Shown here: in pieces, positions 25,105-50,847 of the stretch
Layout of the letters: every line of letters starts with the position of its first letter
Position numbering within the stretch: the stretch's first letter is position 1
Source: Entomortierella parvispora E1425
Lineage: Eukaryota; Fungi; Mortierellomycota
Assembly: GCA_020891255.1 (NCBI GenBank)
Contig: BQFW01000007.1
Coordinates: forward strand, 496,001 to 560,000
Direction of reading: 5' to 3'
DNA length: 64,000 nt
The notes under the pieces: model-generated
Told to the model about the DNA's origin: nothing
What the model saw: the letters and a program-made list of their open reading frames with translations, nothing else
Database searches by the model: none
Made by a program: the position numbers and the translations under genes

Positions 25105-28100
25105 ATGACTAGTGGAGCACAACGCGGACGGGGCCAGTCAGGCGGAGGACGTGGCGGAGGCTTTTTTAAAGGACCAAACCACAACGAGTCCTTTGGCCGA
25201 GGAGGAGGAAGAGGAGGAGGAGGTTTCTCTGGCCGTGGAGGCGATCGAGGAGGAGGCAATCAGGGTGGTCGAGGCCGTGGAGGCATTTCGAATGTCCAGA
25301 GAGCACAGATTACCGGAGCTACACGGCCCAGCTCCATCCAGGTCGGCAGCGATGGAACAGACGACATCATCGTGGCATCTGCTGCCGGAGAAAAAATCTT
25401 GAACTTTGCGCGGACGGTCTTGACCAAGGAGAACTTTACCAACTTCAGCAGCCGACAAATGCGTGAGTTTGTCAACTCGTGTCTGCTGAACTTGTCGAAC
25501 CATCATTCCGTGGATGTCTCTGGTCTTTTACCCCTCTTGGCATCCAAGACAGGACATGCGCGTCTGAGAGACATCATGATGATGCCCATGGGTGTCGACG
25601 TTGGTCTGGATACCTCGCGAATCTCGTTCCAGTTCTTGGCTTTGCCTCTAGTCGGTGTCTTGACAAGAGAGGCTGTTTGCATGACGACCATGGGCAATGA
25701 GTCCAACGTTATATATGCAACCGTCTACAACTACCGCGAAACATTCATCGAGGACGGTATTGTCGCTTGCATGCAGCAACTTTTAACTCGTGGGTCTCTC
25801 GACGACTATAGTCCCGGAGCAGCGAAGATTCAACGGGAGGACGATTACCTCTGCGTGGTCTCCTCTTTGTCATGTGCTCTGCTGGCGATTGTGCGTCTGG
25901 TTTATCAGATCGTCACCCGCATTCGTGATGCCCGCACGAGCCTCTCAGAAACGGTCCGGACCCTCTCAAAGCAAGTCCAGACATGTGTCAAGATTTCCGT
26001 CGCCACCGAACGAGACCAGTTTATCAACAGGATCATGGTCAGCGAGATCAACAAACTGGTACGAATCATCTCTGACGCCGAAGACGCCATCATCCCAGAG
26101 CTGGAGGTAGCCACAGCCGATCGTTCCAACGGAGGAGGTGATGTGCCCATGATCAGAGCCTTGCGCCACACCTTTGACCCCCCAGGCGCGCTCTCAGAGC
26201 TTGGACCTAGACATAACAACGACCACTCAGAGATCGCGGACATCAGCATCCTTCCAACTCAGCAGGAAATCACTTGCGGACGATCACCTTTCCTACCATC
26301 CAACTTGCTCGATGCGCCTCATTTCCTTGCAGCTGGATGGAAGCGTCAGGTTGACACTCACTTTCGCCTCTACCGCGAGGATATGATGGACCCATTGCGC
26401 CGAAGCATTACATCTTTCCTCTCTGCTCTCTATGATACCCCCTATGGAGCAGAAGACCGCTTGCTCGCAAACAAGGAACTCCGCAGGGTGCTCGATAACA
26501 ATGTCAATCTCAACGTTTACGGTAACGTTCAGGTCTTTGGCATGATCATGGAAAAGCACACGGGCGGTAATATCGAAATCGGATTTACTCAGCCACCCCA
26601 GATCCTTGGAGCGTCCAAGGAGCGACGCACGGTCATGCGACGGACAGAATTCTGGAAGCGTTCCAAGAATCGCCTCATGCATGGCGGACTTGTCTGTCTT
26701 ATTAGCCGCGCTGATGGATTGACCACCAGAGGAGACACCGAGAATGACTTTCAGCTGATTCTGGCGGTCATTGCGAACAGGAACGACGAAGCGTTGGCCA
26801 AGGACGAAAATGTGGCACGTATTCATATCACTCTTGCCAACCCTCTCCAGTATCTCGACTTGTTGAACTCTGGAAGAACATCCAAGCATTGGTTCCTAGT
26901 AGAGTCGCCTGGGGCGTACTTTGGTTCATACCGCCCTATTCTGAAGGCCCTCCAGCTCAGTATCCCTGCTTCCTTGCCCTTTGGAAAGTACTTGGCCCCT
27001 ACCGCGGAGGAACTTGCCGAGCGTGGAAACACGGTGGATCCACCCATCTATGCTCGAGCTCCAACCTTTAGCTATGACCTTTCTGTGCTGCTGACTGGAC
27101 GAACATGCAATCTGGATGTCAACAATGTCGATTCTGTTCAGCAGGCTGTCCGCACTCTCCAACAAGGCGGAAGCACCTTGGACCAGACGCAGGCGATTGC
27201 TTTGGTGGACACTCTTTGTCGAGAAGTCGCTCTCATTAATGGGTATGTTGTTGGAGAAAGTTGATGTGGGCCAAAAGTGTAGATTCAACATGCTAATTTT
27301 TTGTTTTTGGATTGTAGACCTCCTGGTACTGGAAAGACCTGGATTGGTGTTGCATTGATGCAGGTGCTCCTAGCCAACAAGAAAAAGTCTGAAATTGGGC
27401 CTATTCTGTGTATTTGTTACACCAACCACGCCTTGGATCAGTTCTTGGAGCATCTTCTGGACAAGGGTATCGACAAAATTGTCCGTGTTGGTGCTCGTTC
27501 GCAATCAGAGAAGTTGGAGCCGTACAACCTGCAGGCACTCATGATGAGCTGCGACAAGCCATACTCTGTGCGACAATGTATTAGAGATACAATCACGGAA
27601 TTGGAAGTTGCCAGCAAAAAGATCAAGGCTCTCGAACGCGACATCCAAGGAGACTGCGTCAAATGGAGTCTCTTGGATGGTTCTTTGAGTCTCGACTATC
27701 CCTTCTTGTTTGATCAGTTCGACAAGGCGATCAGAGAGTACCAGCGAGGCCCAAGAGGAATCTGTGACATTGGCGACGATGTCGACGAGGGATTCACCGC
27801 AGTTGAGAATAAAAGGTCGACAGGAAGACACCCTTTTGATCGCTGGAGATATGGTATCGACATTCAGGAGATAGCAGACTTCAACAAGAAGTTGAAAGAG
27901 GACTATGAAAATCCCACCGAAGACTCTCAACAAAATATATACAATGTGCTAGCGGAAGACAGGAATGATAGTCCTCGACGACCCCCCGTCATGAAGAAGA
28001 TTCCAATGAGCAATCGACCGGTTGAAGTGCTTTACAATGCCGATATCTGGAAAATGTCAATGAAGGAGCGCGCTAAACTCCTTTATCAATGGAGACCAGA

Positions 28101-31100
28101 AATTCAGAAAACACTCATGCTGCGGCTTGGGGAGCTGATCAAGCACGTTGAGACCCTGAACGACAAAAAGAATGGCGCCAACGATGAAGTCCGCCGTGGC
28201 ATTCTCCGTGGGTGCGAAGTCGTAGGAATGACCACCAATGGAGCCGCCAAGTCTCAAGAGCTGATCAAGAAACTGGCGCCCAAGGTCATCATCTGTGAGG
28301 AGGCTGGCGAAGTCCTGGAGTCCCACATCCTCTCAGCCCTCTCAGCATCCACTCAGCACTTGATCCTCATTGGTGACCACAAGCAGCTTCGACCTCAAAT
28401 CGAGACTTATAATTTGCAGTCGGATTCCCCTGTTGGCAAAAAGTATAGCCTGGACAAGTCTCTTTTCGAAAGACTCGTTACCTTGGACAAGAACCCGCTC
28501 CCGATGTCTATCCTTACCACTCAGAGACGAATGCGACCTTGTATCTCCAATCTCATCCGCAAACCTCTTTATCCTGATCTTGAGGACGGTCAGAATACTC
28601 ATCACTATCCACCGGTTAGTGGAATGAGCCAAGATCTGTACTTCATGCACCATGCCCACCCCGAGGACGCAAAGGATGATGCATTCGGAATGCAGTCGTA
28701 TTCAAGCACCTTCGAGGCGAACATGGCTGCTCAGCTCGCTGTCTACCTAATCAAGAATGGCTACGATCGACCCGGCGACATTGCCATCCTTACACCTTAT
28801 CTTGGACAGCTTTCCAAGCTCCGTGACGCGTTAAAGAAAAAGGTCATGGTTGTCCTCGATGAAAGAGACCAGGAGCAGTTGGACCAAAAAGAGCTTGATG
28901 AAGGAATTGAGGTCCAGGAGGTGCTTATACAGAATGGGACAAAGGTGGGCACGAAGAACATCTCGCTGCAGAGACAGGTGACTCTCCGCACCATTGACAA
29001 CTACCAGGTATGGTATTCAAAGGGTCCACCAGAACCGGCTCAGAAACCGTTTCATTTTTCTAGTTGCTCATGTCATCTCACACTGACACTTTTATTTCTG
29101 AATATTTTTAGGGAGAGGAGGCCAAGATAATCATCATCTCCTTGGTTCGTAACAATGTTGCCAATGACCCGTCGTCGTCCGGAAACATTGGCTTTTTGAA
29201 GTCGCCAAACCGCACCAATGTCTTGCTATCTCGTGCTCAGCATGGCATGTTCATTATGGGTAATGCATTCATTATGGATCACGAGAAGAACGGGATCTGG
29301 CCCAGCGTCATCAAAGAGTTGAGATTGCATGACAGAATTGGTGAAGGCCTTCCGATTCAATGCAAGAACCATCCCAACACCACTCGACTGGTGGACTCTA
29401 TCGACAGCTTCAAGATCATGTCTCCTAATGGTGGATGCAATCTCCCTTGTGGCCGCGGCATGGGCTGTGGACATACATGTCCGCTCCAGTGTAAGTATAC
29501 CTACCTCCTGCTCGCCGTTTTTCCCATTCGTAAAAAGGCCTTGTATGCTAACTTTGTCGGTCTTGCTTATCTCTTTAGGCCACCCTGACGATGTTGAACA
29601 CCGCCTTGTGAAATGCTTCCAGCCATGCGATCGGCTGCACCCCATTTGTCAACATGCGTGTCCCAAACAGTGTGGCCAAGAATGCGGGGATTGTAAGGAG
29701 GTCGTAGAGCCGCTTTTACTCAAGTGCGGCCACGTTCTGGAAAAACCCCTGTGTCATCAAAAGAAGAATCCATCCAATATCACTTGCAGAGTCAAGGTCA
29801 TCCGCAAGCTACCCACTTGCGAGCATGAGCACGAGATGCAGTGTTATCAGGATCCCGCAAAAGTTGTCTGCGAGCGCCCATGTGGTTCACCCTTACCCTG
29901 TGGCCATAGTTGTGTGAACCGCTGCTCAGCCTGCCAGAAGGCTTCGACGCCCAAGCTGGCAAGAAAGAACCTCGAGCCGGTAGCAGTGAAAGTCATTCCT
30001 CGTACCAACCATGGGCCTTGCGGTACCAAATGCGGAAGCAATTTGTTCTGCGGTCATGCCTGTGATGCCTACTGCCACTCAGGCGAAGATTGCCCAGCTT
30101 GCAAGCAAAAATGTGCTGTAGCATGTGTGCACAGGACCTGCCATCTCGCGTGTGAAACCGCTTGTGCCGCTTGCAGCGAGGACTGCACCTGGATGTGCAA
30201 GCACAAGGGACGCTGCCGAATGCCATGTGGAGTTCCTTGTGACCGCTTGCCATGCGACATGAGATGCGACAGAATACTGGGCTGTGGACATCAGTGTCCC
30301 TCCGTTTGTGGCGAAAACTGTCCCCCCTCAAAGTTCTGCGTGGAATGCAAGGACCCTGAAACCATGAGCATGGAGGTCGACATGATCATGATGACCAGTC
30401 TAGGCGAGACAAATGTGTCCGAGGATCCGATCCTGGTCCTTGCCTGCGGTCATGCTCTAACCGTGTCCACTTTGGATGGCCTGATGGAGATGGGCCAGTA
30501 CTATAAGGAAAGCACAAATGCAGCAGGCAATCCAACCTTTACCGCGATACGAGCAATGCCTGGAGGGGAAGTTAAGCAGGTGTCTTGTCCAAGCTGCCGA
30601 AAGCCCATTGTACAGCTTTTGCGATATGGACGACGTATTAAGGACGCCCAACTGAGCATGCGCTTGAAAAAGTACCAGATCGTTCAAGAAAACAGCATGG
30701 GAGAAATCAAAGATCGATATGATGTCACCAAGGCGCTAATGGATCAGAAACATAATGCTTTCCTGCAAGCCCTGTCCAAGGTCAAGGCCGAATCTTGCGC
30801 TGATCCTCCTCTTTCATCTGCTCGGAAGCTTGGAAAGTTTGCGCGAGAGACGGATCCATTCCCCGGCTCTGTGTTTTGGTTCGTGGATGCGATCTATGGA
30901 GTTCCGCCGGAGCACCGTGATGCCTGGGAGACGCATATGGAGTCTGCTGGAAGTCTAACGAAAAAGCTCAGGAAGATCAATAGCGCAGCAATCAAATCCC
31001 CCACAAAGCAACTCTTTGAAGCTGCGGTCGCGCGTCTGTACCGTTTCCAGCAAGAAAGCATGCAGATTGAGCAGGATGCGAAAGCAGACCAAGGAACGGC

Positions 31101-31779
31101 ATCGGCCATCATTCAAAAATGCATCCAGCAATGTGGGCTTCCTGCCGATGGAAATGGCGGTTCATCATTCGTTGAATCCCTTGCAGAAATGACAAACGTG
31201 TTATTGCTGGTGCTTTCTGAAGCTTCATCTGCCATGGTAGCGGCCGGGACAAATACAGGCTGGTATTACTTTGTGGAGGATCTTCTCTGCTGTTGCTTGA
31301 GCTATACTCTAGTCACGATGAGAGCTGCTGAGAAGGGAAACTACAACCGCCGCGTCGCGTATTCGCGTGTGAATCTGCTCTATATCTTAGGCGAACAGAT
31401 CCGCTGGCTGGGCCACCGGCCTATCGCAGACATCGGGCCGGAAGCCTCAACCACGGAGCTAGAGGTACCAGGCACATTGCCAAGCGCCAAAGACGCCCGC
31501 AGTAGGATTGTCGACGCACTGGTAGAGACCTTCACGAAAGAGTTCAATGAGCTGAGGAAAAACTGCCCTCTAGGGATCAAAACAGAGTGCCTGGCTAGAG
31601 CGGATGAAATCAAGGAGCGGATGGCTACAGCAGTGAAAATTGCCAAGGGAGACCTCAACGCGCCATTAACGAAGGCAGAAAAGATGGAAGTCTTTCGGGC
31701 AATATCTGCCACTCTTGGAGGGTCGGGACATTGGTACAGATGCCCGAATGGTCACACGGTAAGGACCTGCTTTGACTTG

Positions 31780-31813
<34 letters not shown>

Positions 31814-32020
31814 ACATATATATTGCATGCAGTCAAGGAACAATGGCTCACCCATTTCTTTTGTCTGATCACATAGTATGTAATTGGTGACTGCGGGATG
31901 GCCATGATGGAATCAACATGTCCAGAATGCGGGGCCGTAGTTGGAGGAGGTCGCCATCGTCTCCGGCAAGACAACGCTATTGACACCGAGTATGAGAATC
32001 TGTATAGACGAGCTGCCTAA
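25105..32020 (+). CDS. ZNFX1: ZNFX1-like SF1 (Upf1-like) RNA helicase with RGG N-terminus, NF-X1 zinc fingers, RING-like region and C-terminal RZ finger; 5 exons, 2176 aa
   Basis: Exons 25105-27242, 27318-29007, 29112-29490, 29579-31758 and 31877-32020 total 6531 nt in frame. Helicase motifs GPPGTGKT, YTNHALDQF, ICEEAGEV, LIGDHKQLRP, TQRRM, TIDNYQGEEA, NRTNVLLSRA. Repeated CGHxC knuckles; LACGH...CPSCRKPI; GHWYRCPNGHTYVIGDCGMAMMESTCPECGAVVGGGRH. Confidence 0.92.
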
Positions 32021-32087
32021 GTCGATGACATGGGAGCGAGTGAACGGATCATGGTGGCAGATAAGAAAGAGAGGACTAGGACAAGTG

Positions 32088-32093
32088 AATAAA
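32088..32093 (+). terminator. Candidate polyadenylation signal of the ZNFX1-like gene
   Basis: AATAAA 68 nt after the stop codon; sequence match only. Confidence 0.3.
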
Positions 32094-32493
32094 GATCTAT
32101 GTTGCCATCCCGATTCTACGAAAGAAGTGCATGGATGATAAAGAGAGTGGACGAGGTGAGATTTTTAGCGTGGTCATAGGCCGCGAACAAGGTCATAGTC
32201 ACTGTCGAGATAAGGAGAAAGATATGATCCCACCACGGGGCCCCTTTATCCACGCGAGACTTGCAGGGAACACACTTTCAACCTTCATCGTCATCATGGC
32301 TATATCGTCCAAGTGAGAGGCAACAGGAAGAGCGCGAGATCACACCTGTGCGTTCAGTTTACCCAAACAGTGAATCTTGGGAGGTCGGACTGTTGTACTC
32401 CACCCCGAGGTAACACAATATGGCGGATTTCAAGTCGAAGTGAGTTGGCCAGTGCACGCTCTTGTTGACGGAGTCTTATTTTTCGCCGGTATT

Positions 32494-33591
32494 CTTATAG
32501 GGGTGCGGATCAAACCCTCCAGCGCAAAGAGCAACCAAACGCCAACTCTTTGTCCATCCAGAGGAAAGCAGAGTCACTGAACGACATGCAAGCTGACTTT
32601 GTCTTGCCCACCCTGTTTGGTTTCCTGTGGCTAATCGATGAGTGCCATGAGGCCCTGAAGAGACTTCTCTTTTTTTTTTGTTTTGTTGTTTCATTTTGCT
32701 CGATCGCTGTTTATTGCTTTTTTCTTTCTTTAGAGAGACAACAATCGAAAGAGCTGGAGCCATCGGCACTGTTGACCTTGATTCTTGGAGGACTGTTCAT
32801 CATCTTGGCTTGAGAACCTATCCCTATTAAGACTCTTGCCAAAGAAGAAGGAGAGGGGAGGGGAGGGGAAGGACAAGGAGGACCACTTACCATATCATCA
32901 TATCATAGCATCACATCATTCATATCATCAAGACCAGCATAGCATGCATACATCATATCATCAAGCAACCGAGCATAGTATTCATACAACAAGTCATCAA
33001 AACTCAACATAGCATGCAAACATCAAGTCATCAAGCAACAGGTCATCTTATCCAACATAGCATTCATACATCAAGGCATCATACATCAGGCATTCATACA
33101 TCAAGACATCACACATCAAGGCATCACACATCCAGGCATCATACATCAAGGCAACATACATCAAGTCTTCATATCCAACATAGCATTCATACATCAAGGC
33201 ATCAGGGTATCAAGGTCATCTAAGCGGTGGGCAAGAACGAGAGTTTTTGGTGAGTGCAAGGTTCGTTTCGTTGAGGAGACAGACTGGGAAGAAAGGGGGA
33301 AGACTGGAGGCAAGAGTGTTAGGGGGGAAAAGCAGGAAAAAGAAAAGGTGTTAGTGCTGAAAGCCGGGAACGAGAGAAAAGATAACAGGAGGTGGTCGGA
33401 CGAGAAGGGCAAGAAGGGCCAGTGAAGAGCTGGTTGCGAAGGAAGGAAAGGTGTTGGAGAGGTATGGACAGCTGGGGGAGAGAGTGTGGGGACAGTGGAT
33501 GGATGTTGGGTCATGGTGGTGTGGCAAGGGAAGTGGAAGGGTGAAGAACAGAAAGGAAAAGGTGAGAAGCGAAGCAGATAAAGGCAGGCCA

Positions 33592-33622
<31 letters not shown>

Positions 33623-34093
33623 CGTCAGAGGAAGGCGGCAACATCGTACAGGCTTCGCTGTTGCTGTTGACTGGGAGGGAGATAGGGGAGGGAGATAGGG
33701 AAGGAGAGGCAGAAAGAAGACATGAAAAGGACCGAGGAAGAGAGAGAGACGGACGGACGAACGGACACACGGGATTGACACGGACTGATCAAACTCTTTT
33801 TTTTTTTTTTTTTTTTTGGCTTTTTTTTTTCTTGGGGGGAGGTCCCTTCATTTGACTGGCAAGATGAAGGGGAACTGAAGTAGGAATGGAGAAGCAACAA
33901 AACAGGGAGCGTGAGAAGCTGGTGCAGGAGGTGAGAGCAACATCAGCGTTGCTGATCTAAAATGAAGATTGAAAGAGAAAGAGAAAAAGAGGGCGAGAGA
34001 GAGAGAGAGAGAGAGAAAGACACATTTCATGGACAGGCTTGATCACCGACTAGAAGGCCCCTCATCTCTTCTCTCCCCGGAGGACACGGCTCA
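32494..34093 (+). repeat. Left arm (1.6 kb) of a long inverted repeat
   Basis: Reverse complement of 34342-35942. Mirrored identical ORFs in the track (33014-33223+/35212-35421-, 32785-33012+/35423-35650-, 32711-32893-/35542-35724+) all give a coordinate sum of 68435. Confidence 0.97.
33061..33199 (+). repeat. Degenerate tandem repeat, 14-16 nt unit CAT(T)CATACATCAAGG, about 8 copies (left arm)
   Basis: cattcatacatcaagg / catcatacatcagg / cattcatacatcaaga / catcacacatcaagg / catcacacatccagg / catcatacatcaagg ..., embedded in a G-poor CATCA-rich tract (about 32890-33220). Confidence 0.9.
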
Positions 34094-34341
34094 TGTTATA
34101 ACCTTCAACTTCTTTCCGCTATTTGACAGGCATCGTTGGTCCCTGTGGGCCTGTCAAGTTAGAACAGAGTGACAGATGGTGAGTGTGAAAGGCCAGGAGA
34201 AAGAGAGCAGGAGATTTCTGGAGTAGGTATCATTGTCATGCCATCTTGATATTCATCATACAATACAACAGATGCAAGTTCGTGGCCACCCTTACAATAT
34301 CGGCACCTCCCTTAGTTTCTTCTCTCTCTCTCCTGACCCAG

Positions 34342-34811
34342 TGAGCCGTGTCCTCCGGGGAGAGAAGAGAGGAAGGGCTTTCTAGTCGGTGATCAAGCTT
34401 GTCCATGAAATGTGTCTTTCTCTCTCTCTCTCTCTCTCTCGCCCTCTTTTTCTCTTTCTCTTTCAATCTTCATTTTAGATCAGCAACGCTGATGTTGCTC
34501 TCACCTCCTGCACCAGCTTCTCACGCTCCCTGTTTTGTTGCTTCTCCATTCCTACTTCAGTTCCCCTTCATCTTGCCAGTCAAATGAAGGGACCTCCCCC
34601 CAAGAAAAAAAAAGCCAAAAAAAAAAAAAAAAAAAAAGAGTTTGATCAGTCCGTGTCAATCCCGTGTGTCCGTTCGTCCGTCCGTCTCTCTCTCTTCCTC
34701 GGTCCTTTTCATGTCTTCTTTCTGCCTCTCCTTCCCTATCTCCCTCCCCTATCTCCCTCCCAGTCAACAGCAACAGCGAAGCCTGTACGATGTTGCCGCC
34801 TTCCTCTGACG

Positions 34812-34842
<31 letters not shown>

Positions 34843-35942
34843 TGGCCTGCCTTTATCTGCTTCGCTTCTCACCTTTTCCTTTCTGTTCTTCACCCTTCCA
34901 CTTCCCTTGCCACACCACCATGACCCAACATCCATCCACTGTCCCCACACTCTCTCCCCCAGCTGTCCATACCTCTCCAACACCTTTCCTTCCTTCGCAA
35001 CCAGCTCTTCACTGGCCCTTCTTGCCCTTCTCGTCCGACCACCTCCTGTTATCTTTTTCTCTCGTTCCCGGCTTTCAGCACTAACACCTTTTCTTTTTCC
35101 TGCTTTTCCCCCCTAACACTCTTGCCTCCAGTCTTCCCCCTTTCTTCCCAGTCTGTCTCCTCAACGAAACGAACCTTGCACTCACCAAAAACTCTCGTTC
35201 TTGCCCACCGCTTAGATGACCTTGATACCCTGATGCCTTGATGTATGAATGCTATGTTGGATATGAAGACTTGATGTATGTTGCCTTGATGTATGATGCC
35301 TGGATGTGTGATGCCTTGATGTGTGATGTCTTGATGTATGAATGCCTGATGTATGATGCCTTGATGTATGAATGCTATGTTGGATAAGATGACCTGTTGC
35401 TTGATGACTTGATGTTTGCATGCTATGTTGAGTTTTGATGACTTGTTGTATGAATACTATGCTCGGTTGCTTGATGATATGATGTATGCATGCTATGCTG
35501 GTCTTGATGATATGAATGATGTGATGCTATGATATGATGATATGGTAAGTGGTCCTCCTTGTCCTTCCCCTCCCCTCCCCTCTCCTTCTTCTTTGGCAAG
35601 AGTCTTAATAGGGATAGGTTCTCAAGCCAAGATGATGAACAGTCCTCCAAGAATCAAGGTCAACAGTGCCGATGGCTCCAGCTCTTTCGATTGTTGTCTC
35701 TCTAAAGAAAGAAAAAAGCAATAAACAGCGATCGAGCAAAATGAAACAACAAAACAAAAAAAAAAAGAGAAGTCTCTTCAGGGCCTCATGGCACTCATCG
35801 ATTAGCCACAGGAAACCAAACAGGGTGGGCAAGACAAAGTCAGCTTGCATGTCGTTCAGTGACTCTGCTTTCCTCTGGATGGACAAAGAGTTGGCGTTTG
35901 GTTGCTCTTTGCGCTGGAGGGTTTGATCCGCACCCCTATAAG
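34342..35942 (-). repeat. Right arm (1.6 kb) of the long inverted repeat
   Basis: Where I compared the arms by eye, differences are 4 substitutions in the innermost ~60 bp plus several 1-nt homopolymer length differences (e.g. T21/A22, T10/A9, G6/C5). Confidence 0.97.
35236..35374 (-). repeat. Mirror copy of the 14-16 nt tandem repeat (right arm)
   Basis: ccttgatgtatgaatg / ccttgatgtatgatg / cctggatgtgtgatg units, the reverse complement of the left-arm array. Confidence 0.9.
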
Positions 35943-36461
35943 ATGATGGTGTGTGCAATGAGAATACCAGGCAAAATTGTTCAGCGCGCACTGGCCAACT
36001 CGCTTCAAGTTACAAATCCACTTGCTGTTCCACCGCAGGACGCGTTCTGGACCTGAGGCACCCTTCCGCGTCAAAAGTAGAGCAGTGCCCGTGTCGCCCA
36101 GATGAGTAAACGACTTAAGACTGTGCACGCAGTTTCAGAATGCCTGAGGGTAGCCTCATACCAATGCCCACGGTTCCAGTACCTGTGAATTTTGAGTTGC
36201 TGAACAATTCAACGAGCAGGTGCACACTCCAAAAAAGCCCCCTCTCCTGAAAGCAGCCCTCGATGACAAAGTCCACTTCTTATTCTGCCTTAAAGCAGTT
36301 TATCTCAGTATTCCGCCAACCGCTGATGGATCTCGCCTTACTCAACCGGCTTCCAAAGGGTCACAGGCGCGGAGTGGTAAAAGATCGGTCCCACCCCCCC
36401 TTTTTTTTTGTTTCTTGCGCGAGTTTCTGCCTGTCTTTTACTCTCTCTGGAATGTACCCTC

Positions 36462-38027
36462 ATGCATCCTCATCCACTCCATCTTCCCGAGGTTCTTGGC
36501 CTCTTCGGTCCTTTCCTCTCCATAGAGTCCCTCGCCTGTTGCATCCTTGTCAATCGGCAATGGCACACAGTGTACATGCCTCATCTCTGGCATACTGTCT
36601 GCGTCTCAACTCATTTTGCCCATGGGCCCTACATTCTGTCCAACTTGGCGCTCCATGCTCATCTTGTGCAATACCTGGATTATGGCATTGAAGGCGACGC
36701 TCAGGAGCAACCATTCTCCGAGCTCCATTTTCCGCGTCTCCGGTCCATGACCCTCTATAGTCGTGGCAGCCAACCAACTCTTGGCCAAATTCTCTGGCGG
36801 CGACACATGGATCATATCCAAACCTTGAACATACAGAACGCATCTGAGCTTCACTCAGGTTTCTTCAAACGAGTCCAACCGGGCGCGTTTTGTGCGTTAA
36901 AGTCCTTGACGTTGGCGAATGGATCCCTTGTGTTCGAAGATATGGACAATGATGTCCGAGAACTTCTCTGTCAATTGGACTCGCTGGACTTGCGACTTGT
37001 CACGCTGAGCGAGGTCGACATCGACACCAGACCTAACTACATCCCCCAATGGGAATTCATGACGGACAGCAGCGACCATGCTGCGGAGCGCAGGTCGCCT
37101 AATATTCGGCACCTCTCTCTAACAAGTTGTCGAAGCTTGGCCGACGAGCTTCACTTGATCAAAGAATGCCGGCAACTCGAATCTTTGGAATGGAAGGATA
37201 TTCGACGAAGAACTGTACCGCCAAAGAGTTTTGTCCGAGTCAGCGGGATGTGCCCATTTCTGGAGAAGCTGCATCTCACAATGGAATTCCAAGACGAGGA
37301 CCTAGCATTGTTCCTAGGCAGGTTGACCTGTCCTCTCCGAGAATTGAGCGTGGTAGGGTCATTTTTTGGAGATCAGAGTGCGCAGGCTTTACTGGACGCG
37401 TCAGGACCGAATGGCGAGAGGAAACATAGTAATCGATTGGAGAAGCTTTCTTGGATTGACAAGGGTGCGACCACAGGTGCGATGATACAGCGGATCATGT
37501 GCGAGTGTCCAAAACTAAAGGATTTTCAGGCAAGGTTAATAACGGACTTGGACTTACAGAAGGATCCGCGCCCTTGGGTCTGCACCGATCTGCGATCTTT
37601 GAGTATCACATTAGCCCTAGTGATGAATGACCAAGACAATGATGACAAGACCCTTACAATCTCGCCCTTCTTTGATCGCCTATCGACTCTTACCCGCTTC
37701 GACACCTTGGTCCTTTTCAATATGATACGTAACAGTCGTAATGGAGAAATTGAAGAGGCAGCATGCAGGGATCAGAAGTTCAAGCTGATGGAGGTCAATC
37801 TCGAGAAAGGGCTGGATCGGCTTAACACTTTGACGAGTCTTCGATTATTCGACCTGGAACTCACTGAACCCAATACGTTTTCTGCAGAGGAAGCTCTTTG
37901 GATAGTTCAACATTGGCCTCGACTCGACAGGATTAATGTTTCAAAGGTGCAGGACGCAAATAAGCAAGAGATCCAGAATATTTTTGAAAAGTCCTGGGTG
38001 CAGTGCAATTTTGAAAATGTCTGGTAA
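36462..38027 (+). CDS. F-box protein with LRR-like (RNI-like) C-terminal region, single exon
   Basis: HPLHLPEVLGLFGPFLSIESLACCILVNRQWHTVYMPHLWHTV F-box, followed by LRR-like repeats (FPRLRSMTL, CALKSLTL, CRQLESLEW, CPFLEKLHL, CPKLKDF, WVCTDLRSLSI). Confidence 0.85.
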   Translation: MHPHPLHLPEVLGLFGPFLSIESLACCILVNRQWHTVYMPHLWHTVCVSTHFAHGPYILSNLALHAHLVQYLDYGIEGDAQEQPFSELHFPRLRSMTLYSRGSQPTLGQILWRRHMDHIQTLNIQNASELHSGFFKRVQPGAFCALKSLTLANGSLVFEDMDNDVRELLCQLDSLDLRLVTLSEVDIDTRPNYIPQWEFMTDSSDHAAERRSPNIRHLSLTSCRSLADELHLIKECRQLESLEWKDIRRRTVPPKSFVRVSGMCPFLEKLHLTMEFQDEDLALFLGRLTCPLRELSVVGSFFGDQSAQALLDASGPNGERKHSNRLEKLSWIDKGATTGAMIQRIMCECPKLKDFQARLITDLDLQKDPRPWVCTDLRSLSITLALVMNDQDNDDKTLTISPFFDRLSTLTRFDTLVLFNMIRNSRNGEIEEAACRDQKFKLMEVNLEKGLDRLNTLTSLRLFDLELTEPNTFSAEEALWIVQHWPRLDRINVSKVQDANKQEIQNIFEKSWVQCNFENVW

Positions 38028-41561: not shown

Positions 41562-42421
41562 TGTTCCTGGATGAGAAAAAGGGATGATGGTACGAAAGAG
41601 AGTTGTGCTATGTGTAAAGAACGTAGAAAGGTGAAAAAAACAAGCTCATTTTATAGCAGCCCAGTTTTTTTCTTCTTTTTGATCCATTGCCCCAGCATGC
41701 TTTTGCAGAGTTGGAAAAAGGAAATTCCCAGCCTGCCGCCCAATGTGAGCTTTTTGTTCAACAAGGTTGAGGAGTTGGGGCGCTTGCTTGCGTGCTGAAG
41801 AGGGACAGAGGAAGAACTCTGATTCTTCCAGGATCAATCCATTAGGCTCCCGTCTTCGCCCTTGCCCCGCCCCGCCCTCGCCCTTGCCTTCGCCCTCGCC
41901 CTACGAGCAATCAGTTTACTAAGCCCATCTAAAGTGATGTGCCCAGAAATTCATGCAGCCAGGGTCTTCCGTGTTCGTTGATGCACAAAATCTTGGCTCT
42001 CACTTTAACAGGGCATATAGCCACAGAATGAGTAACAGAGGCGCGGAGTTACCCTGCGCTGCGTGGCACTGAAATAGGTGAGGCGTGACGAAGAAAGGTA
42101 TTATGGCAATGTAAAGGTGAGGCTGACATGCATGGATTGGATAGGACACTGTACAATGCCCTTAGACCCTCCATTGAATTGTTGCCTAGAATCCTGACTC
42201 AGAACTACAGAGGCTCCATATCTCGTATCCGTAGTCACCTGCTACCTGTTCGCCAGTCGGTTAAGGTTAACGGCATGGTATTGTTGGCGACAGCAATGCA
42301 GCAACAGTTCCTCAGTCCGTCGCAAACAAGTCTCTCCTTTGTTTGGTTTGAGTGCAACAGATCGCCTTCATTTTATCTCTCTTTTCTGCTGACAATTCAT
42401 TCAGGATCGCGGATGACATCT

Positions 42422-44279
42422 TCAAACAGGTCTTGCTAGAGGGTATACTTGACGTCCTTGGGCTGCCAGGATTTCGCGCGTTTTGATCAAGCTACGCTGA
42501 GGTACAGGAGGGACAGTTCCAACGTCCTCATACGGCGCAATGAAGGACGCTTGAGGTCTGTGCAAGACCACCTTTTTCAAGAACCGAAGCCAAAGCCAGG
42601 CAGGCATGTTTCTCCGGAACATTCTGAAGAGGGCTCCTTTCAGATTCTACCAAAAAAAAAAAAAAAAAAAAAAAAATCAGCACAGCGCGAGAATTACGAG
42701 ATGATATCCCTCCCGATGTAGCCTACTTTTTGGTTGCCGGTTGCCAGTCTTCGAGTATCCTCATAGTACTGGACAGCTAGGGGATATCTCTCCAAGTAAT
42801 ACTCCTGGAAGGTCTTTTCTACCGTTGGCACATCCAAAGAAGGGAGAACGTTGATCCAATTGGCAAGGCAAATTGCGTCATGCATCGCCGCGGTTGCTCC
42901 CGAACCTCCAGTAGGATCCAGTTTGTGACATGCTAGAAAAAACCGCCAAAGGGTATGTTAGCCAACTTCCAAGGCAGCACAGCACGTAAACCCAAATGCA
43001 CAGAGGGGATCCCTACCATCACCAATCAACACACAACGTCCAGAGTACCAAGTCTGAAAAACTTTTTCTTCGAGAGACACTTTGGAGATAAGTTCCTTGG
43101 GTGTAACGTCAAAGAGTGTTCCCAGAGTCGATCCAGGAGGTCCATTAGGGATGGGAAAGTCACGTACTTCATCACACATGGCCATCGCAGCCTCTGGTCC
43201 CCATTCAGAGGTTTTGAAAGTGTCGTGATCCTTCATAGTTGTCTTGTCCAGGTGCTGCGTCACCATCCAGCAAATGGTTTTGTGTCCAGTAGTAAAAGTC
43301 CACCACTATATGAAAATGATGTAAATTAGCTGTTGAACGAGATTGTCCCATATTGCTTTCTATAACTTGCACCGCCGCAGTTTCCGTGTCTTACCGTGTA
43401 TTTGTTTTCCACGCCGATCATCTGGTTCGTATCGCAGGTGTCCTTCTTCAGCTCTGGAAAGTCGTTCATATCCAGAGGAGGTGTCTGTCCCACGATGCAG
43501 ATCATGTCGTAGGGCAAGGCAGTGTCATCTGAGGATGGCAAACGTCCCTCTTCCTTCAGCCGGCGGTACAAGTTTTGCCGAATTGAGGAGTTCGTTCCAT
43601 CGCACCCCACAAGAATATCACCCTCGTGCTCTGAGTTGTCTGAGCAGATGATCTTCACTCCATTCTCTACCTCCTTCACCGATAGAATGCGCTTGTTGAA
43701 CAAGATTTTTTCCCTGGGAATACGTCGGAAGAGCATCCCGTAGAATGCGGGACGAGACACAATGCGGCTGTCTGCGCCACCACTATATAAGAGCCGAGCC
43801 AAGATTTGTATTTAGGAATCTCAAGAGCAACCGTAAAGTAAGTCGCCCTACCAAGGTCTTTTCAAAAGAATGGAAGACTTACAAGGCAATTGTGGGACTG
43901 AGGTCGGTGACAAAGTCAAGCTTGGCGTTTCCATCTCTTACCTCGATGGTGTGATTTACAATAGAAGCGGCACGGAAGTCCTCGTAGACGCCTAGTTGAT
44001 GAAGCACGGGTGCTACCCTGGATGCAATGGAAAACGCAGATCCTTCAAACAGAAGAGGGTAAGTTACAGAGGATAAATATTGTCAGAGGGAATTGCGTTA
44101 TATGTCAATGAGATTGTACCCAAAGGCTTGACAGCCAGGCTGCGCTCAAAGATAGTGTAGGGTACTCCAGCCTTCTCAAGGAGGAGGGCGAGGGTCAAAC
44201 CACTGATGCCTGCACCGACGATCAGGACTCTAGGACGGGTCGGCGGGGGTGAAAAAGATGCGGGCGGGCCTTGAGACAT
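42422..44279 (-). CDS. FAD-dependent monooxygenase (group A flavoprotein), tandem copy 1 of 4, 6 exons
   Basis: RVLIVGAGISGL (GxGxxG), VGCDGTNSSIR (DG motif), LIGD|ACHKLDPTGGSGA...MHDA (GD motif). Splice phases checked; frame intact. Confidence 0.92.
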
Positions 44280-44611
44280 AGTCGACTAAAGAGGAGGGGG
44301 AGGAATGAAGAAGGGTGGAGTGAGGAAGGTGCAGTGAATGACTGGAAGGGTGCATCTCTTGCTCATTAGTCGGCCCGCATTCACCCTCATGTGCTGCTCA
44401 TTCTTCTTCCTCCATCAGCTCTTGACTTTGTGCGACACAACAAAAGGGACAAAAGTTGGATGTGGAGCAGAAAGCAAGGTCCTCAAATGTTGCACAAGCT
44501 CTTTTGCCCTGCTGCTCTGCCCTGCAGCTGTCACAACTTGTTTGCCCGGTCAACTGCAGCCGGCTTGGCAGTGCGCATGGTCATCTTTATATACTGGTGA
44601 GATCTATGTCA

Positions 44612-46517
44612 TCATATGGTTGCTGCCATATCGTGCACCTGGCGTCCTTGAGCCGCGAGGATCTCACGTGTTTTGATCAAGCTCCGTTGAGGTGCAGGCG
44701 GAACCGTTCCTACATCCTTGTAGGGCGGCAAGAACGAGGCTTGAGGCCGGTGCAAGACCACCTTTTTCAAAAACAGGGTCCAAAGCCAGTTCGGCATTCT
44801 CCTTCGAAAAAGTCGAGCAAAAGCACCCTTGAAGTTCTAGATATGAGAAAAGAAAGGAGAGAGTCAGATCCAGCATCCGTGGAAGCCTAGGGTGAAGATC
44901 ATCCTTGACCTTCAATTCCGCCCTACTCGTGAATACCTTCTTGTTGCTTGCCGCCAGTAGCTGAGAACTCTCAAAGTATTGAATTGCGATGGGATATCGC
45001 TCCAGGTAATACTCTTGAAAGATGTTTTCAACTGCTCGCTCATCCAACGAGGGAAGGACATTGATCCAATTGGCAAGACAGATAGCGTCCTGCATTCCTG
45101 CGGTGGCCCCAACTCCCCCTGCTGGATCCAATTTGTGGCAGGCTGCATCCCACGGAACACAAAACACAGAGAAATCGCAAGACAGGATCATGAAAACATT
45201 AATCGCACGATCTTTTTTTTTTTTTTTTAAAAAAAACACACATGCTGTTGGCACAACTAAGTTTCTTACCATCACCGATCAATACGGTTCGGCCAGAGTA
45301 CCAGGTCTGGAAGACCTTTTCTTCCAGCGTCACTTTGGAAATGAGTTCCTTGGGCGTTAGATCGATCAATGTCCCAAGAGTTGATCCAGAAGGTCCATTC
45401 GGGATCGCAAAATCCCGCACCTCGTCGCACATGGCCATCGCAGCCTCTGGTCCCCATTCAGACGTTTTAAAAGTATCATGGTCTTTCATTGATGTCTTGT
45501 CGAGATGCTTGACAACCATCCAGCAGATAGTATCGTACGCTGTGGTGAATGTCGCCCACTATACACAGAGAAGGCGAAGAAAATGCCAAGAGGGTGTCAA
45601 AAAAATGCAATTGAAATCTTCGAACGAGCTCCCCATCCAGATCCGGTTTCATTACCGTGAACATTTTCTCTACGCCAACCATGGTATGCATTTCACATTC
45701 TTCTTTCTTCAGCTCGGGAAAGACATTCACGTCCAAGGGCGGTGTCTGGCCTACGATACATATCTTGTCATAGGGTAGGGCCGTGTCATCTGAAGGTGGG
45801 AGACGACCTTGGTCTCTGAGCCTAGAGAACATGGCCTGGCGAACAGCCGAGTTTGTCCCATCGCAGCCCATGATAAGATCACCCTCGTACTCTGAACTGT
45901 CCGAGCAAACGATCTTTACGCCACTTTCTGTGTTCTTCACAGACAGGATGCGCTTGTTGAACAAGATTTTCTCTTTGGGGATCCCCCTATAGAGAATCTC
46001 ATAGAAAGCAGGACGAGAGATAATACGTCCCTCGGCGCCCCCGCTAAGTAATCTTTTTAGTAAATAACAATAGGAACGGGGGATATCTCCTTCCCTGATC
46101 TCAAGAGGCAAGAAAATTGAAGACTTACAAGGCCGCGCCTGCAGTGAAGTCCGATACATAATCCAACTTTCCATCCTCATGTCGATTGTATGTAAACCTG
46201 TTAATAAGAGAAGCAGCGCAAAAGTCGTCGTAGATGCCCAACTGATTCAGGAGAGGGGTGATTCTTGATCCAAGAGCAAAGGCCGACCCTTCAATGTAGA
46301 AAATGCAAAATTCCTTGGTGAGAAAGTGAGATCCGAAATAAGTTGCACGTTGTCACCAGAAAAGGCACCCACCTAATGGTCTGGCTGCAAAGCTACGTTC
46401 AAAGAGAGTGTAAGGAACCCCAGCTTTCTCGAGGAGGAGGGCAAGAGTCAGGCCGCTAATGCCAGCACCAACGATCAAGACCCGGGGACGCGTTGGCGGA
46501 GAAGTGAATACTTGCAT
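44612..46517 (-). CDS. FAD-dependent monooxygenase, tandem copy 2 of 4, 6 exons
   Basis: MQVFTSPPTRPRVLIVGAGISGL, MGCDGTNSAVR, LIGD|ACHKLDPAGGVGATAGMQDA. Same intron positions as copy 1; frame intact. Confidence 0.9.
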
Positions 46518-46825
46518 TTAGGTGCAGAAGAAACGAGGAGAAAAATGAGAAGTGGAGGAGAAAAAAAAAGGAAGAAAGAAGTTGTGGGTGCCAGGGTGAA
46601 TGGCAACACGATTGTCCCCTTCCCATCTCCCCATCCTCCCACCTTCCCATCTTCATGTGCTCATTCTTGAACTTGATTGATCTCTCATTTGCTCCTGCCT
46701 TGTGTACTTTGTGCCCCGCTTGTGCTCTGAACTCAATCAAGTCACATCGGTCGCAGGCCTATTATTTTCCCTTCGTTGTACAACAAACTTTTATTGCACT
46801 CTTTCCAAAGCGAAGATAGTGGTCA

Positions 46826-48761
46826 TCAAACGGTTGTTGCCATGGCATGCACCTGTCTTCCCTGAGACTCCAGTATCTCACGTGTTTTGATCAAGCTCTG
46901 TTGAGGTGCAGGCGGAACCGTTCCTACATCTTTGTAAGGCGGCAAGAACGAGGCTTGGGGACGGTGCATGATACTCTTTTTCAAAAAGATGAGCCAAAGC
47001 CAGTTCGGCATTCTCCTTCGAATAAATCGAACAAGGGCCCCTTTCAAGTTCTGTGTCATTAAAGAAAAGGAAGGAATAGGTGATCGTGAGTACAAGAAAC
47101 AACGAGTGATCGGCCTTTTCTCTTTTTTTTTCCCTCTTCTTGTTCTCTTCCTCCTTTGATAAGTTATAAGGTTGTACCTTCTTGTTGGTGGCAGCCAGCA
47201 TTTGAGATTTTTCATAGTACTCAATGGCGACAGGATATCGCTCCATATAGTACTCCTGGAAAATATTTTCAACAGCTCGCTCATCCAGCGAAGGCAGAAC
47301 GTTGATCCAGTTTGCGAGACAAAGAGCATCCTGCATGCCGGCAGTGGCCCCAACTCCTCCTGCCGGATCCAATTTGTGGCAAGCTGTAATCCACAGATCG
47401 TTCAACAACACAGCAAACAAGAGGGTTGTGGAAATGTCAATACAGACGATCGCGATTTACAATACATGGTTCTTACACGCCAGGCTCCTTACCGTCGCCA
47501 ACAAGTACTAATCGGCCAGAGTACCAGGTCTGAAAGACCTTTTCTTCCAGCGTCACTTTGGAAATGAGCTCTTTGGGTGTGAAGTCGATCAGTGTTCCAA
47601 GAGTTGACCCAGGGGGTCCGTTCGGGACCGCCAAGTCACGCACCTCATCGCACATGGCCAATGCAGCTTCTGGTCCCCATTCAGAAGTTTTGAAAGTATC
47701 ACGGTCCTTCGTTGAGGTCTTGTCAAGGTGCTTGACAACCATCCAGCAGATGGTATTGTATGCTGTAGTAAATGTAGCCCACTAGATACAAAGAATAGAG
47801 AGAACCAAAAAAAAAAAAAAAAAAAAAAACCCCCCAAGAGGATGTCAAAAAAAAATTGCAGTCATCGGTTTGATCCTCCATCCAAATCATGTTTCTTTAC
47901 CGTGAACATTTTTTCTGCGCCAACCATGATGCTCATGTCACACTTTTCCTTCTTCAGTTCTTGAAAGAGATTCACGTCCAAGAGAGCTGTCTGACCAACA
48001 AGACAAATCTTGTCATAGGGTAAGGCCGTGTCATCTGAGGATGGGAGACACCCTTGTTCCTTTAGTCGGCGGTATAGGTTTTGACGAATGGCCGAGTTTG
48101 TTCCATCACAGCCCACAAGGAGGTCGCCCTCATACTCTGAATTGTCCGAGCAAACGATTTTGACACCGTTCTCTGTGTCCTCCACGGACAGGATGCGCTT
48201 GTTGAGGAAGATCTTTTTCTTGGGAACACCTCTATAGAGGATCTCGTGGAAAGCAGGACGAGAAATGATACGTCCCTCGGCGCCTCCGCTAAACAACATT
48301 TTCGGTGAGAAGTGGTGTATCAAGACATCTCTCAAATAGAGGCATTGGTAAAAGTATAGGAACATACAAGGCCTCGCCTGGACTGAAATCGGCAATGAAG
48401 TCAAGTTTGGCGTTGTCGTCACGCATGTGCGCAAGATGATTTACGATAGATGCCTTGCAGAATTCGTCATAGATGCCCAATTGATGAAGAATAGGGGCAA
48501 CGACTGCCCCGAAGGCGAACGCGGACCCTTTCAGGAGAAACAACATGAACAGATCAGCATAGCGCATTGAAAGGGTTACAAGACTTTGTATTTTATCGCT
48601 TGTATCCTACCAAGAGGCTTGATGATGGGATTACGTTCAAAGATCATGTAGGGTACTCCAGCCTTTTCCAAAAAGAGGGCAAGGGTGAGACCGCTGACAC
48701 CTGCACCAACGATTAAGACCTTGGGACGCGTTGGTGGAGGGTTGGATGCGTGCTGCAACAT
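46826..48761 (-). CDS. FAD-dependent monooxygenase, tandem copy 3 of 4, 6 exons
   Basis: MLQHASNPPPTRPKVLIVGAGVSGL, VGCDGTNSAIR, LVGD|ACHKLDPAGGVGA. Same intron positions. Confidence 0.9.
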
Positions 48762-49001
48762 AACGGATGGTACAATAAATACAGGAAGGAAGAAAAGAAT
48801 GATGGAGGAGATGAGATGATCTCCTTCCCATCTTCCCATCTTCCCGTCTTCCTCTCATCTTGTGCTCATTGATGGTCTTCATTCAACACTGATCTGCTCT
48901 TGCTTGTTTCACGAACCTAATTCAATCATCTGGCCCTCTTCTCTTACTTCTGTGTCACCAAGTCGAACGTTTATTGCGCTGTTAGAGAGTCAAGGCAACC
49001 C

Positions 49002-50847
49002 TCAGATGGTCGTTGCTAAATCGTGCACCCCGCGTCCCTGGGCCACAAGGATCTCACGCGTTTTAATCAAACTCCGTTGAGGTGCAGGTGGAACTGTTCC
49101 CACATCCTCATACGGCGGCAAGAACGAAGCTTGAGGGCGGTGCAAGATCGCCTTTTTCAATAGCGAGGTCCAAAGCCAACCAGGCATTCTTCTTCGAATG
49201 GTTCGATACAAAGCCCCTTTCATTCCCTTAGGTAAAAAAAAAAAATCAGGACAGTGAGCCATTGGAGTGAGGTTAAGGATCGCCTCCAGCCGCTTTTTTC
49301 CTTTGGCAGAGTGCTTGCGTACCTTTCTATGGGTAGTTGCTAACATTTGAGAAGTCTCGAAGAACTGAATGGCAACGGGGTATCGCTCCAGATAGTACTC
49401 TTGGAAGGTGTTTTCAATCGATCTTTCATCCAGCGAAGGGAGGACGTTGATCCAGTTTGCGAGACAAAGAGCATCCTGCATCCCAGCGGTGGCCCCAACT
49501 CCTCCTGCTGGGTCCAACTTGTGGCAAGCTACACCCCGATCAAAAAATAACGAAGGAAAAGAACATGCTGTCAACTTTTGCGCACGATCCACAGAACCTG
49601 GAGCACTATAGATCCCTTACCATCACCAATCAACACGATTCGGCCGGAATACCAGGTCTGAAAGACCTTTTCTTCCAAAGTCACTTTAGAGATCAGTTCC
49701 TTGGGCGTGAGGTCGATCAGCGTGCCAAGAGTCGTCCCAGGGGGTCCATTTGGGATGAAAAAGCCGTGCACTTCATCGCACATGGAAGACACAGCCGTTG
49801 GTCCCCATTCTGAAGTTTTAAAGGTGTCGTGGTCCTTCACCGTAGTCTTGTCGAGGTGCTTCACTGCCATCCAGCATATAGTCTTGTGCACTGTGGTGAA
49901 CGTAGTCCACTATATACTCAGATAACATCGGGTCTGTTAGGGAAATGGAAGAAGTCATTACTACGTCCAAGCCTCTCTTTTTTCTTACCTTAAACATATT
50001 GTCCAAGTCGACCATCTGGTTCATCTCACATTTTTCTTTCTGTAGTTCTGGGTAGTCATTCACGTCCAATGGAGGTGTCTGACCAACAAGACAAATCTTG
50101 TCATAGGGCAAGGCCATATCATCCGAGGATGGTAGACGACACTCTTCCTTAAGTCGGCGATACGTGCTCTGGCGAATGGCCGAGTTTGTTCCATCACAGC
50201 CCACGACGATATCACCCTCGTACTCTGAGCCATCAGAGCAAACAATCTTGACCCTGTTTTCAATGTCATTGACGGCCAAGATTCGCTTGTTGAACAAAAT
50301 CTTTTCCTTGGGGACATGTCGATGGAGGACTTCATAGAATGCAGGACGGGAGATGATGCGTCCATCGCCACCCCCACTAAAAATAATGTTACGCGTGAGC
50401 TTAATCGCGATACACTAAGAAGAATACCTCAGACAAGCAAACATGAACTTACTAGGTCTCGGCAGGGCTAAAGTCGGATATGTAATCCAGTTGGCCATCT
50501 CCATGTCGATGGTAGGCAAAGTGGTTTATGATGGAGGCAGCGCGAAAGTCCTCGTAGATGCCCAACTGATGGAACAGAGGGGCAACCCCCGATCCAAAGG
50601 CAAAAGCGGACCCTATGAAAAAGAGTCAAGACGTCAATACCGCGTTGAGAATCGACGTGATGTGGTTTAATATTGTCTGCATCCTACCGAGCGGTTTGAT
50701 GGCAGGGCTACGTTCGAAAACCGTGTAGGGGATAGCGGCCTTCTCCAAGAGGAGGGCAAGAGTCAGGCCGCTGATACCTGCACCAGCAATCAACACCTTG
50801 GGACGAGTCGGCGGAGCTGACAGAGAAGCGCATTCGCGTTGAGACAT
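49002..50847 (-). CDS. FAD-dependent monooxygenase, tandem copy 4 of 4, 6 exons
   Basis: MSQRECASLSAPPTRPKVLIAGAGISGL, VGCDGTNSAIR, LIGD|ACHKLDPAGGVGA. Same intron positions. Confidence 0.9.

Follow-up and report, generated by a model that had tools for sequence, protein, structure and literature searches.

A 3.45-kb palindrome in Entomortierella parvispora E1425, a probable lineage-specific inverted duplication of a transcribed non-coding element with arms presumably kept alike by gene conversion

Palindromes with long inverted arms are a kind of structure well known from other organisms. In the palindromes of primate sex chromosomes, the gradient of identity along the arms is explained by intrachromosomal gene conversion from arm to arm. 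Inversion of the enclosed segment is an expected by-product of recombination between long identical inverted repeats. Mirror symmetry is also found in foldback transposons, such as FB of Drosophila, and in the inverted-repeat centromeres of Komagataella phaffii, Candida tropicalis, and Schizosaccharomyces pombe, in which the cores and arms measure several kb to tens of kb and which occur once per chromosome in gene-poor DNA. Within the library available for searching, no paper turned up that describes such palindromes in Mortierellaceae. Here we describe a palindrome of 3.45 kb in the fungus Entomortierella parvispora E1425 (Mortierellomycota). It lies in a stretch of 64,000 nucleotides from contig BQFW01000007.1 (positions 496,001 to 560,000 of the forward strand), hereafter called the window, and all positions are counted from the first letter of that window. 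The palindrome has a ZNFX1-type helicase gene on its left and an F-box gene on its right. It is probably a lineage-specific inverted duplication of an older non-coding, transcribed intergenic element, and the core of the two copies has probably been kept alike by gene conversion.

The arms were delimited by a repeat search and by globally aligning the left half with the reverse-complemented right half. The left arm spans 32493–34093 and the right arm 34342–35943; the spacer between them (34094–34341, 248 nt) is unique and asymmetric. A mirror repeat of such size is far beyond chance. The spacer is not palindromic itself, and it has no look-alike elsewhere in the window or in the close relative described below. 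The repeat search found no further copy of the arm within the window. The initial annotation had given reverse-complement arms at 32494–34093 and 34342–35942 around a 248-bp spacer; the arms and the spacer stand, and each outer end was moved outward by 1 nt. The arms differ at only seven sites in ~1,601 nt, which corresponds to an identity of 99.6%. Four of the seven are substitutions (34036/34399, 34056/34379, 34061/34374, and 34064/34371), and all of them lie no more than 58 nt from the spacer, namely in the innermost segment of the left arm (34036–34093) and its partner (34342–34399). The other three are 1-nt differences in homopolymer length at 32669/35766 (T10 versus T11), 33376/35058 (A4 versus A5), and 33821/34614 (T10 versus T9). 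These may be typical leftover polishing errors, and are doubtful as real differences, because the assembly was built from Nanopore reads and then polished. Homology between the two sides continues beyond the arms in a diverged form. The left extension (32400–32492) and its right partner (35944–36045) share 88% identity over 73 aligned columns in ~90 nt (z = 8.6 against shuffles), with several indels, one of which (~20 nt) is located at the arm edge. Within them, a 37-nt block at collinear mirror positions (32425–32460 versus 35983–36019) is 84% identical (E 1e-5). The annotation had described substitutions clustered beside the spacer, a middle that, where compared, differed in homopolymers only, and decaying homology outside the arms, and the alignments reproduced all three.

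Positions 32000–36500 of the window agree in every letter with contig BQFW01000007.1 of assembly GCA_020891255.1. The genome of E1425 was assembled from Nanopore 1D reads with SMARTdenovo and polished with Nanopolish and Pilon with PCR-free Illumina reads; the data also include a TruSeq RNA-seq library, and genes were predicted by AUGUSTUS (PMC8759367). Nanopore 1D reads can be palindromic, and a mirror structure in an assembly based on them could be an artefact, for example a fold-back chimera. Two sequencing runs of one sample were placed on 31500–36900 as Logan contigs, which derive from a 31-mer graph. One run, X1, behaves as an Illumina DNA run, and its depths were taken from mismatch-free contigs. 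The left flank has a depth of 68–77 and the right flank 75. A single contig (34006–34429) runs from the inner left arm through the spacer into the inner right arm, crossing both arm-spacer junctions, and its depth of 74 corresponds to a single copy. The contigs inside the arms have depths of 149 (32493–32914) and 153 (33263–33459), twice the value of the flanks. The contigs over the two flank-arm junctions (31826–32522 and 35914–36900) end exactly k−1 (30 nt) inside the arms, and the ends of the central contig at 34006 and 34429 are located exactly 30 nt past the arm-specific substitution first met on either side of the centre. With a correct assembly, a 31-mer graph has to break at exactly these places; therefore, the arms are present twice and the centre once, and both flank junctions exist. 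Both the palindrome and its four inner substitutions are real, and an assembly artefact is refuted, with practically no probability left for it. The earlier disfavouring of an artefact thus proved right, and the comparison of read depth between arms and flanks proposed at that time gave double depth on the arms.

The k-mers of X1 are the same for either orientation of the spacer. Long identical inverted repeats recombine and thereby invert the segment between them, and crossing-over between the arms could make the locus a recombinational flip-flop, possibly acting as a switch. However, the 248-nt spacer contains no gene, no evidence of a promoter, and no RNA, so that a switch would have nothing to act on, and no recombinase gene is located nearby. 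A flip-flop is therefore very unlikely to be what the palindrome is for.

The origin of the palindrome was approached through a close relative. Two metagenome contigs, one from ENA (L005, found with an M16 peptidase fragment) and one from JGI metagenomes (L006, found with the C-terminus of ZNFX1), are 99.7% identical and were assembled independently; they represent one uncultured relative species. The ZNFX1-type gene, the element, and the F-box gene stand in the same order on both contigs, and the longer L005 includes the M16 peptidase gene as well. The gene products of L005 share ~65–90% amino-acid identity with those of the window. Each contig holds one arm homologue (BLASTN, 67.5% identity over 820 nt, E 1e-45), and collinear blocks beyond the 820-nt match reach a (GA)n run, so that the homologue covers window 32493 to ~34040 (L005 12960 down to 11588). 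It has the position and orientation of the left arm, with the outer end continuing into the ZNFX1 side and the inner end into the F-box side. The right arm, the inverted second copy, has no counterpart there. Because its two ends join different neighbours, the single copy is not a collapsed palindrome, in which the inner ends would face the spacer only. The relative is thus truly single-copy at this locus, and the palindrome appears to be an inverted duplication of a pre-existing intergenic element. The loci of Podila, Gryganskiella, and other Mortierellaceae were too distant or not syntenic, and one scan of JGI metagenomes for further relatives returned the same relative species only.

The relative carries a small inverted duplication of its own. 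It measures 94 nt with 80% identity between the copies (L005 11058–11151 and 11473–11566; L006 4909–5002 and 5324–5417), adjoins the inner end of the single element, and lies upstream of that part of the F-box gene which is conserved. In both lineages, this spot seems to be predisposed to inverted duplications. Separately, a diverged palindrome of ~1.3 kb with arms of 80–82% identity was observed in two Mortierella genomes (L001 and L002; 8272–8616 and 9321–9589), between an F-box-like gene and an M16 peptidase gene. Its sequence shows no similarity to the arms of the window, and the gene arrangement is different.

Divergence between the left and right sides of the E. parvispora palindrome follows a gradient. 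The central 1.54 kb has 0 substitutions, the innermost 58 nt has 4 (7%), and the ~90 nt outside the arms differ by 12–16% with indels. In the outer flank, the left-right score given above compares with z values of only 1.8 and 2.7 for each side against the relative. Wherever the arms differ from L005, they do so in the same manner; with one outgroup, a duplication after the split gives the same pattern. The simplest account of such similar arms would be a young duplication without gene conversion, in which the arms are alike since the copy is very recent. It would agree with the overall identity of 99.6%, the more so as three of the seven differences are possibly Nanopore homopolymer errors. 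However, a single recent event is expected to leave a sharp edge and uniform identity, and a gradient is seen instead: the homology extends ~90 nt past the core at 88% with several indels, and the innermost 58 nt has accumulated four substitutions against none in 1.54 kb. A young duplication without conversion is therefore unlikely.

An inverted duplication followed by gene conversion accounts for the locus as follows. The ancestral state, as kept in the relative, is one copy of the element between the ZNFX1-type and F-box genes. In E. parvispora, a second, inverted copy of ~1.7 kb is present between the first copy and the F-box gene, with 248 nt of unique DNA between the two copies. The duplication probably occurred after the split from the relative and would not be recent, because the outer ~90 nt have diverged by 12–16% with indels and the innermost 58 nt by 7%. 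Since the central 1.54 kb is free of substitutions while the edges have diverged, the arms have most likely been copied onto each other by intrachromosomal gene conversion, the tracts of which would seldom reach the arm edges. Arm-to-arm conversion had been named in the initial annotation as the usual cause of arm identity, and the observed gradient fits it. The 248-nt spacer would lower the formation of hairpins or cruciforms enough for the palindrome to persist. The palindrome is most likely a tolerated structural variant.

The arm itself is a conserved, expressed, non-coding unit, namely a long non-coding RNA or else a long region that is regulatory or untranslated. In the comparison of the window with L005, the mismatches at the three codon positions are 140/54/45 in the ZNFX1 exon, with no indels; those in the arm are 98/93/90, with ~90 indels, mostly not multiples of three. 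In the arm, tblastx scores against the relative are at noise level, and all six frames are broken in one or other species. The open reading frames (ORFs) of the arm had no Pfam match, the arm had no Rfam match at the gathering level (below the threshold, only low-complexity noise appeared), and no gene was predicted in the arms by AUGUSTUS or in the NCBI record. These results sustain the earlier description of the palindrome as non-coding, with no transposase or recognisable gene. At the same time, the arm is ~78% identical to the relative in aligned columns and contains several blocks of 12–17 nt that are fully identical, while the DNA between ZNFX1 and the arm reaches only 63%, close to what gapped alignment yields for unrelated DNA.

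The second run, X2, is an RNA-seq run, as shown by a GT..AG joint (31757 to 31876) and an adapter end. Its contigs cover the arms at 32698–32833 (depth 31), 33124–33198 (depth 6–10), and 34647–34749 (depth 24); for comparison, ZNFX1 has a depth of 47 and the F-box gene 15. No X2 contig covers 33853–34576, which comprises the inner arms and the spacer, although scarce molecules, as those of a diced hairpin would be, drop out of Logan contigs.

Several candidates for a product of the arm were considered and rejected. The codon score of the inward ORF at 32550–32813 is gene-like, and the ORF has a hydrophobic tail; it was ruled out as a protein-coding gene because its frame differs between the arms after a T-run, and because the relative has indels that break the frame and lacks codon periodicity. 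The His-rich ORFs of the 15-nt repeats have no Pfam match, their repeat length is not conserved, and they contain stops in the relative. For telomerase RNA or another known RNA, the only telomere-like stretch, CCCTAAC, is missing in the relative, and the Rfam matches are sub-threshold and of low complexity. A conserved RNA structure was also rejected, since the best-conserved block gave consensus folds with next to no energy on either strand (only −11 and −1 kcal/mol over 350 nt).

Three weak hints slightly favour a unit that reads outward from the centre over one that reads inward. The inner 300 nt contains (CT)n and poly(dA:dT) tracts, has no RNA contig, and resembles a fungal promoter; close to the outer end, the outward strand has an AATAAA that is also kept in the relative; and a GTAAGT on the outward strand is kept there as well. 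Each arm would then probably be one outward-reading non-coding transcription unit, with its promoter in the inner 300 nt and the conserved AATAAA near its outer end. If this is correct, transcription of the unit and of the F-box gene in the relative would diverge from an upstream region common to both.

The transcription of the arms also bears on a hairpin-RNA or small interfering RNA (siRNA) locus, in which a transcript through arm, spacer, and arm would fold into a 1.6-kb double strand and feed RNA silencing, perhaps with the ZNFX1-type helicase. The arms are transcribed, a perfect 1.6-kb hairpin is possible by sequence, and ZNFX1 adjoins the element in the relative too. However, no RNA contig was found on 33853–34576, through which such a transcript would have to pass. 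The relative is single-armed; hence, any hairpin would be new, and the conserved element functions in its absence. Two outward-reading units would yield RNAs that are identical instead of complementary. ZNFX1-type genes are numerous in Mortierellaceae, and the adjacency can be a matter of chance. A hairpin-RNA locus is considered improbable.

Some observations weigh against the combination of inverted duplication, gene conversion, and outward-reading units. X1 is probably the data set used for polishing; it is read-level evidence, yet it comes from the same sample. At 34909–34959 (mirror ~33477–33527), one Illumina contig with a depth of 120 and five mismatches was found besides the exact contig, and it may point to a short, diverged sequence elsewhere in the genome that resembles this part of the arm. 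Loss of an arm in the relative, instead of a gain in E. parvispora, is a less simple alternative. The gene conversion is deduced from the identity gradient in one genome with one outgroup, and a second, more recent duplication or conversion over exactly the core would look identical; moreover, the flank divergence rests on a small sample of 73 aligned columns. As for transcription, Logan contigs carry no strand and hence give no direction, and the sole RNA contig that reaches the candidate outward intron (GTAAGT...AG, 32824–32891 in left-arm coordinates) is unspliced. With these points taken into account, an inverted duplication with arms homogenised by gene conversion is still considered the probable explanation.

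The internal features of the left arm are mirrored in the right arm. A minisatellite at 32935–33225 (mirror ~35211–35501), CATCA-rich on the plus strand, consists of 15-nt units within 123-nt units, and its length differs between the species. It is followed by a block at 33230–33790 that is purine-rich on the plus strand, with a pyrimidine-rich mirror image in the right arm. Of all parts of the arm, this block is the one best conserved with the relative, and it contains a (ACGC)n run at ~33592–33620 that the relative does not have. Long poly(dT)/poly(dA) tracts at 33797–33832 (mirror 34603–34637) are found in the relative too and look like promoter elements. A (GA)n microsatellite at 33985–34022, mirrored as (CT)n at 34413–34450, occupies the same place in the relative. 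At the inner arm ends (33974–34022 and 34411–34459), a purine run is paired with a nearby pyrimidine run. We speculate that these runs could form local stem-loops or triplex-prone mirror repeats, and that they could have favoured a template switch behind the duplication.

The neighbour on the left is the ZNFX1-type helicase gene (25105–32020, plus strand), which has Pfam matches to ZNFX1 and AAA_11/AAA_12 and an RZ finger on the NCBI product. Its exon ORFs are located at 25105–27264, 27301–29130, and 29329–31757 and are followed by a last exon, the stop codon of which (32018–32020) is 473 nt from the left arm. The last intron (31758–31875, 118 nt, GT..AG) has a T-run of ~30 inside and was confirmed by the RNA contig joint from 31757 to 31876. 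The CPECG motif of the RZ finger is located in the short last exon (31876–32020). The neighbour on the right is an F-box-like/LRR gene (36408–38027, plus strand), the ORF of which starts at 36408 or 36462, 465–519 nt from the right arm. The unique genes that had been placed within ~500 bp on both sides are therefore confirmed. An RNA-seq contig covers the F-box-like/LRR gene from 36540, and the relative retains the gene from 37236 on, with nothing that corresponds to its N-terminal part. It is absent from the NCBI annotation of BQFW01000007.1, in which no gene is called between the M16 peptidase and ZNFX1 genes. The M16 peptidase gene lies beyond it in convergent orientation, and a fragment of its product matches the protein recorded as insulysin of E. 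parvispora at 100% identity.

Elsewhere in the window, four tandem units of ~2.2 kb with 63–85% mutual identity occupy 42418–50816, and three of them contain ORFs with weak FAD_binding_3 matches. The region has the appearance of FAD-dependent monooxygenase paralogues arrayed in tandem. In the NCBI record, some of the units are fused into one product of 1288 amino acids.

The palindrome alone changes no open question. It is a clean, datable, small example, as a single-copy ancestor is available, both ends mark the reach of homogenisation, and the structure is confirmed by reads; it is useful for the study of inverted duplications and gene conversion in early-diverging fungi. ZNFX1-family helicases act in small-RNA pathways in nematodes and in double-stranded RNA sensing in mammals. 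A wider significance, which we regard as improbable, would arise if read-through or convergent transcription yielded a 1.6-kb hairpin or double-stranded RNA as a new siRNA source beside the ZNFX1-type helicase or, more broadly, if the genome as a whole tended toward kb-scale palindromes. If such a palindrome-forming tendency is true, E. parvispora would be a natural system for studying the tolerance of palindromes in fungi.

The initial annotation had set five models side by side without settling on one: a hairpin-RNA locus, a flip-flop cassette, an assembly artefact, and two of the known systems introduced at the beginning, an inverted-repeat centromere or origin and a foldback transposon. 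Neither of these last two was borne out. Like the inverted-repeat centromeres of K. phaffii, C. tropicalis, and S. pombe, the palindrome has mirror symmetry around a unique core. This symmetry, together with long purine/pyrimidine and poly(dA:dT) tracts, is all that would support a centromere or replication origin. Unlike those centromeres, the palindrome measures 3.45 kb in total, with arms of 1.6 kb and a core of 248 nt, and it is wedged between expressed genes within ~500 nt on both sides; its arms are transcribed, and its ancestor was single-copy. A centromere or origin is very unlikely here.

The likeness to foldback transposons, such as FB of Drosophila, is one of form: both have long inverted arms with tandem repeats inside them and a short middle, and neither has coding capacity. 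A non-autonomous transposon of this type is nevertheless extremely unlikely. The arm depth is exactly twice the single-copy value, which leaves only two copies in the genome. No target-site duplication was seen at 32492/35944, and the ends are blurred, as diverged homology runs past them. The relative has neither an empty site nor a palindrome; it has one arm at the syntenic site, with its ends on different neighbours.

A further comparison is with the palindromes of primate sex chromosomes. The palindrome of E. parvispora is 100–1000 times smaller, has no protein-coding genes, and occurs in a fungus of the Mortierellomycota, and gene conversion in it is deduced from one genome and an outgroup. 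In its organisation, it is nonetheless like them, with near-identical arms, a unique spacer, an identity far above that of the bordering DNA, and differences at the arm edges.

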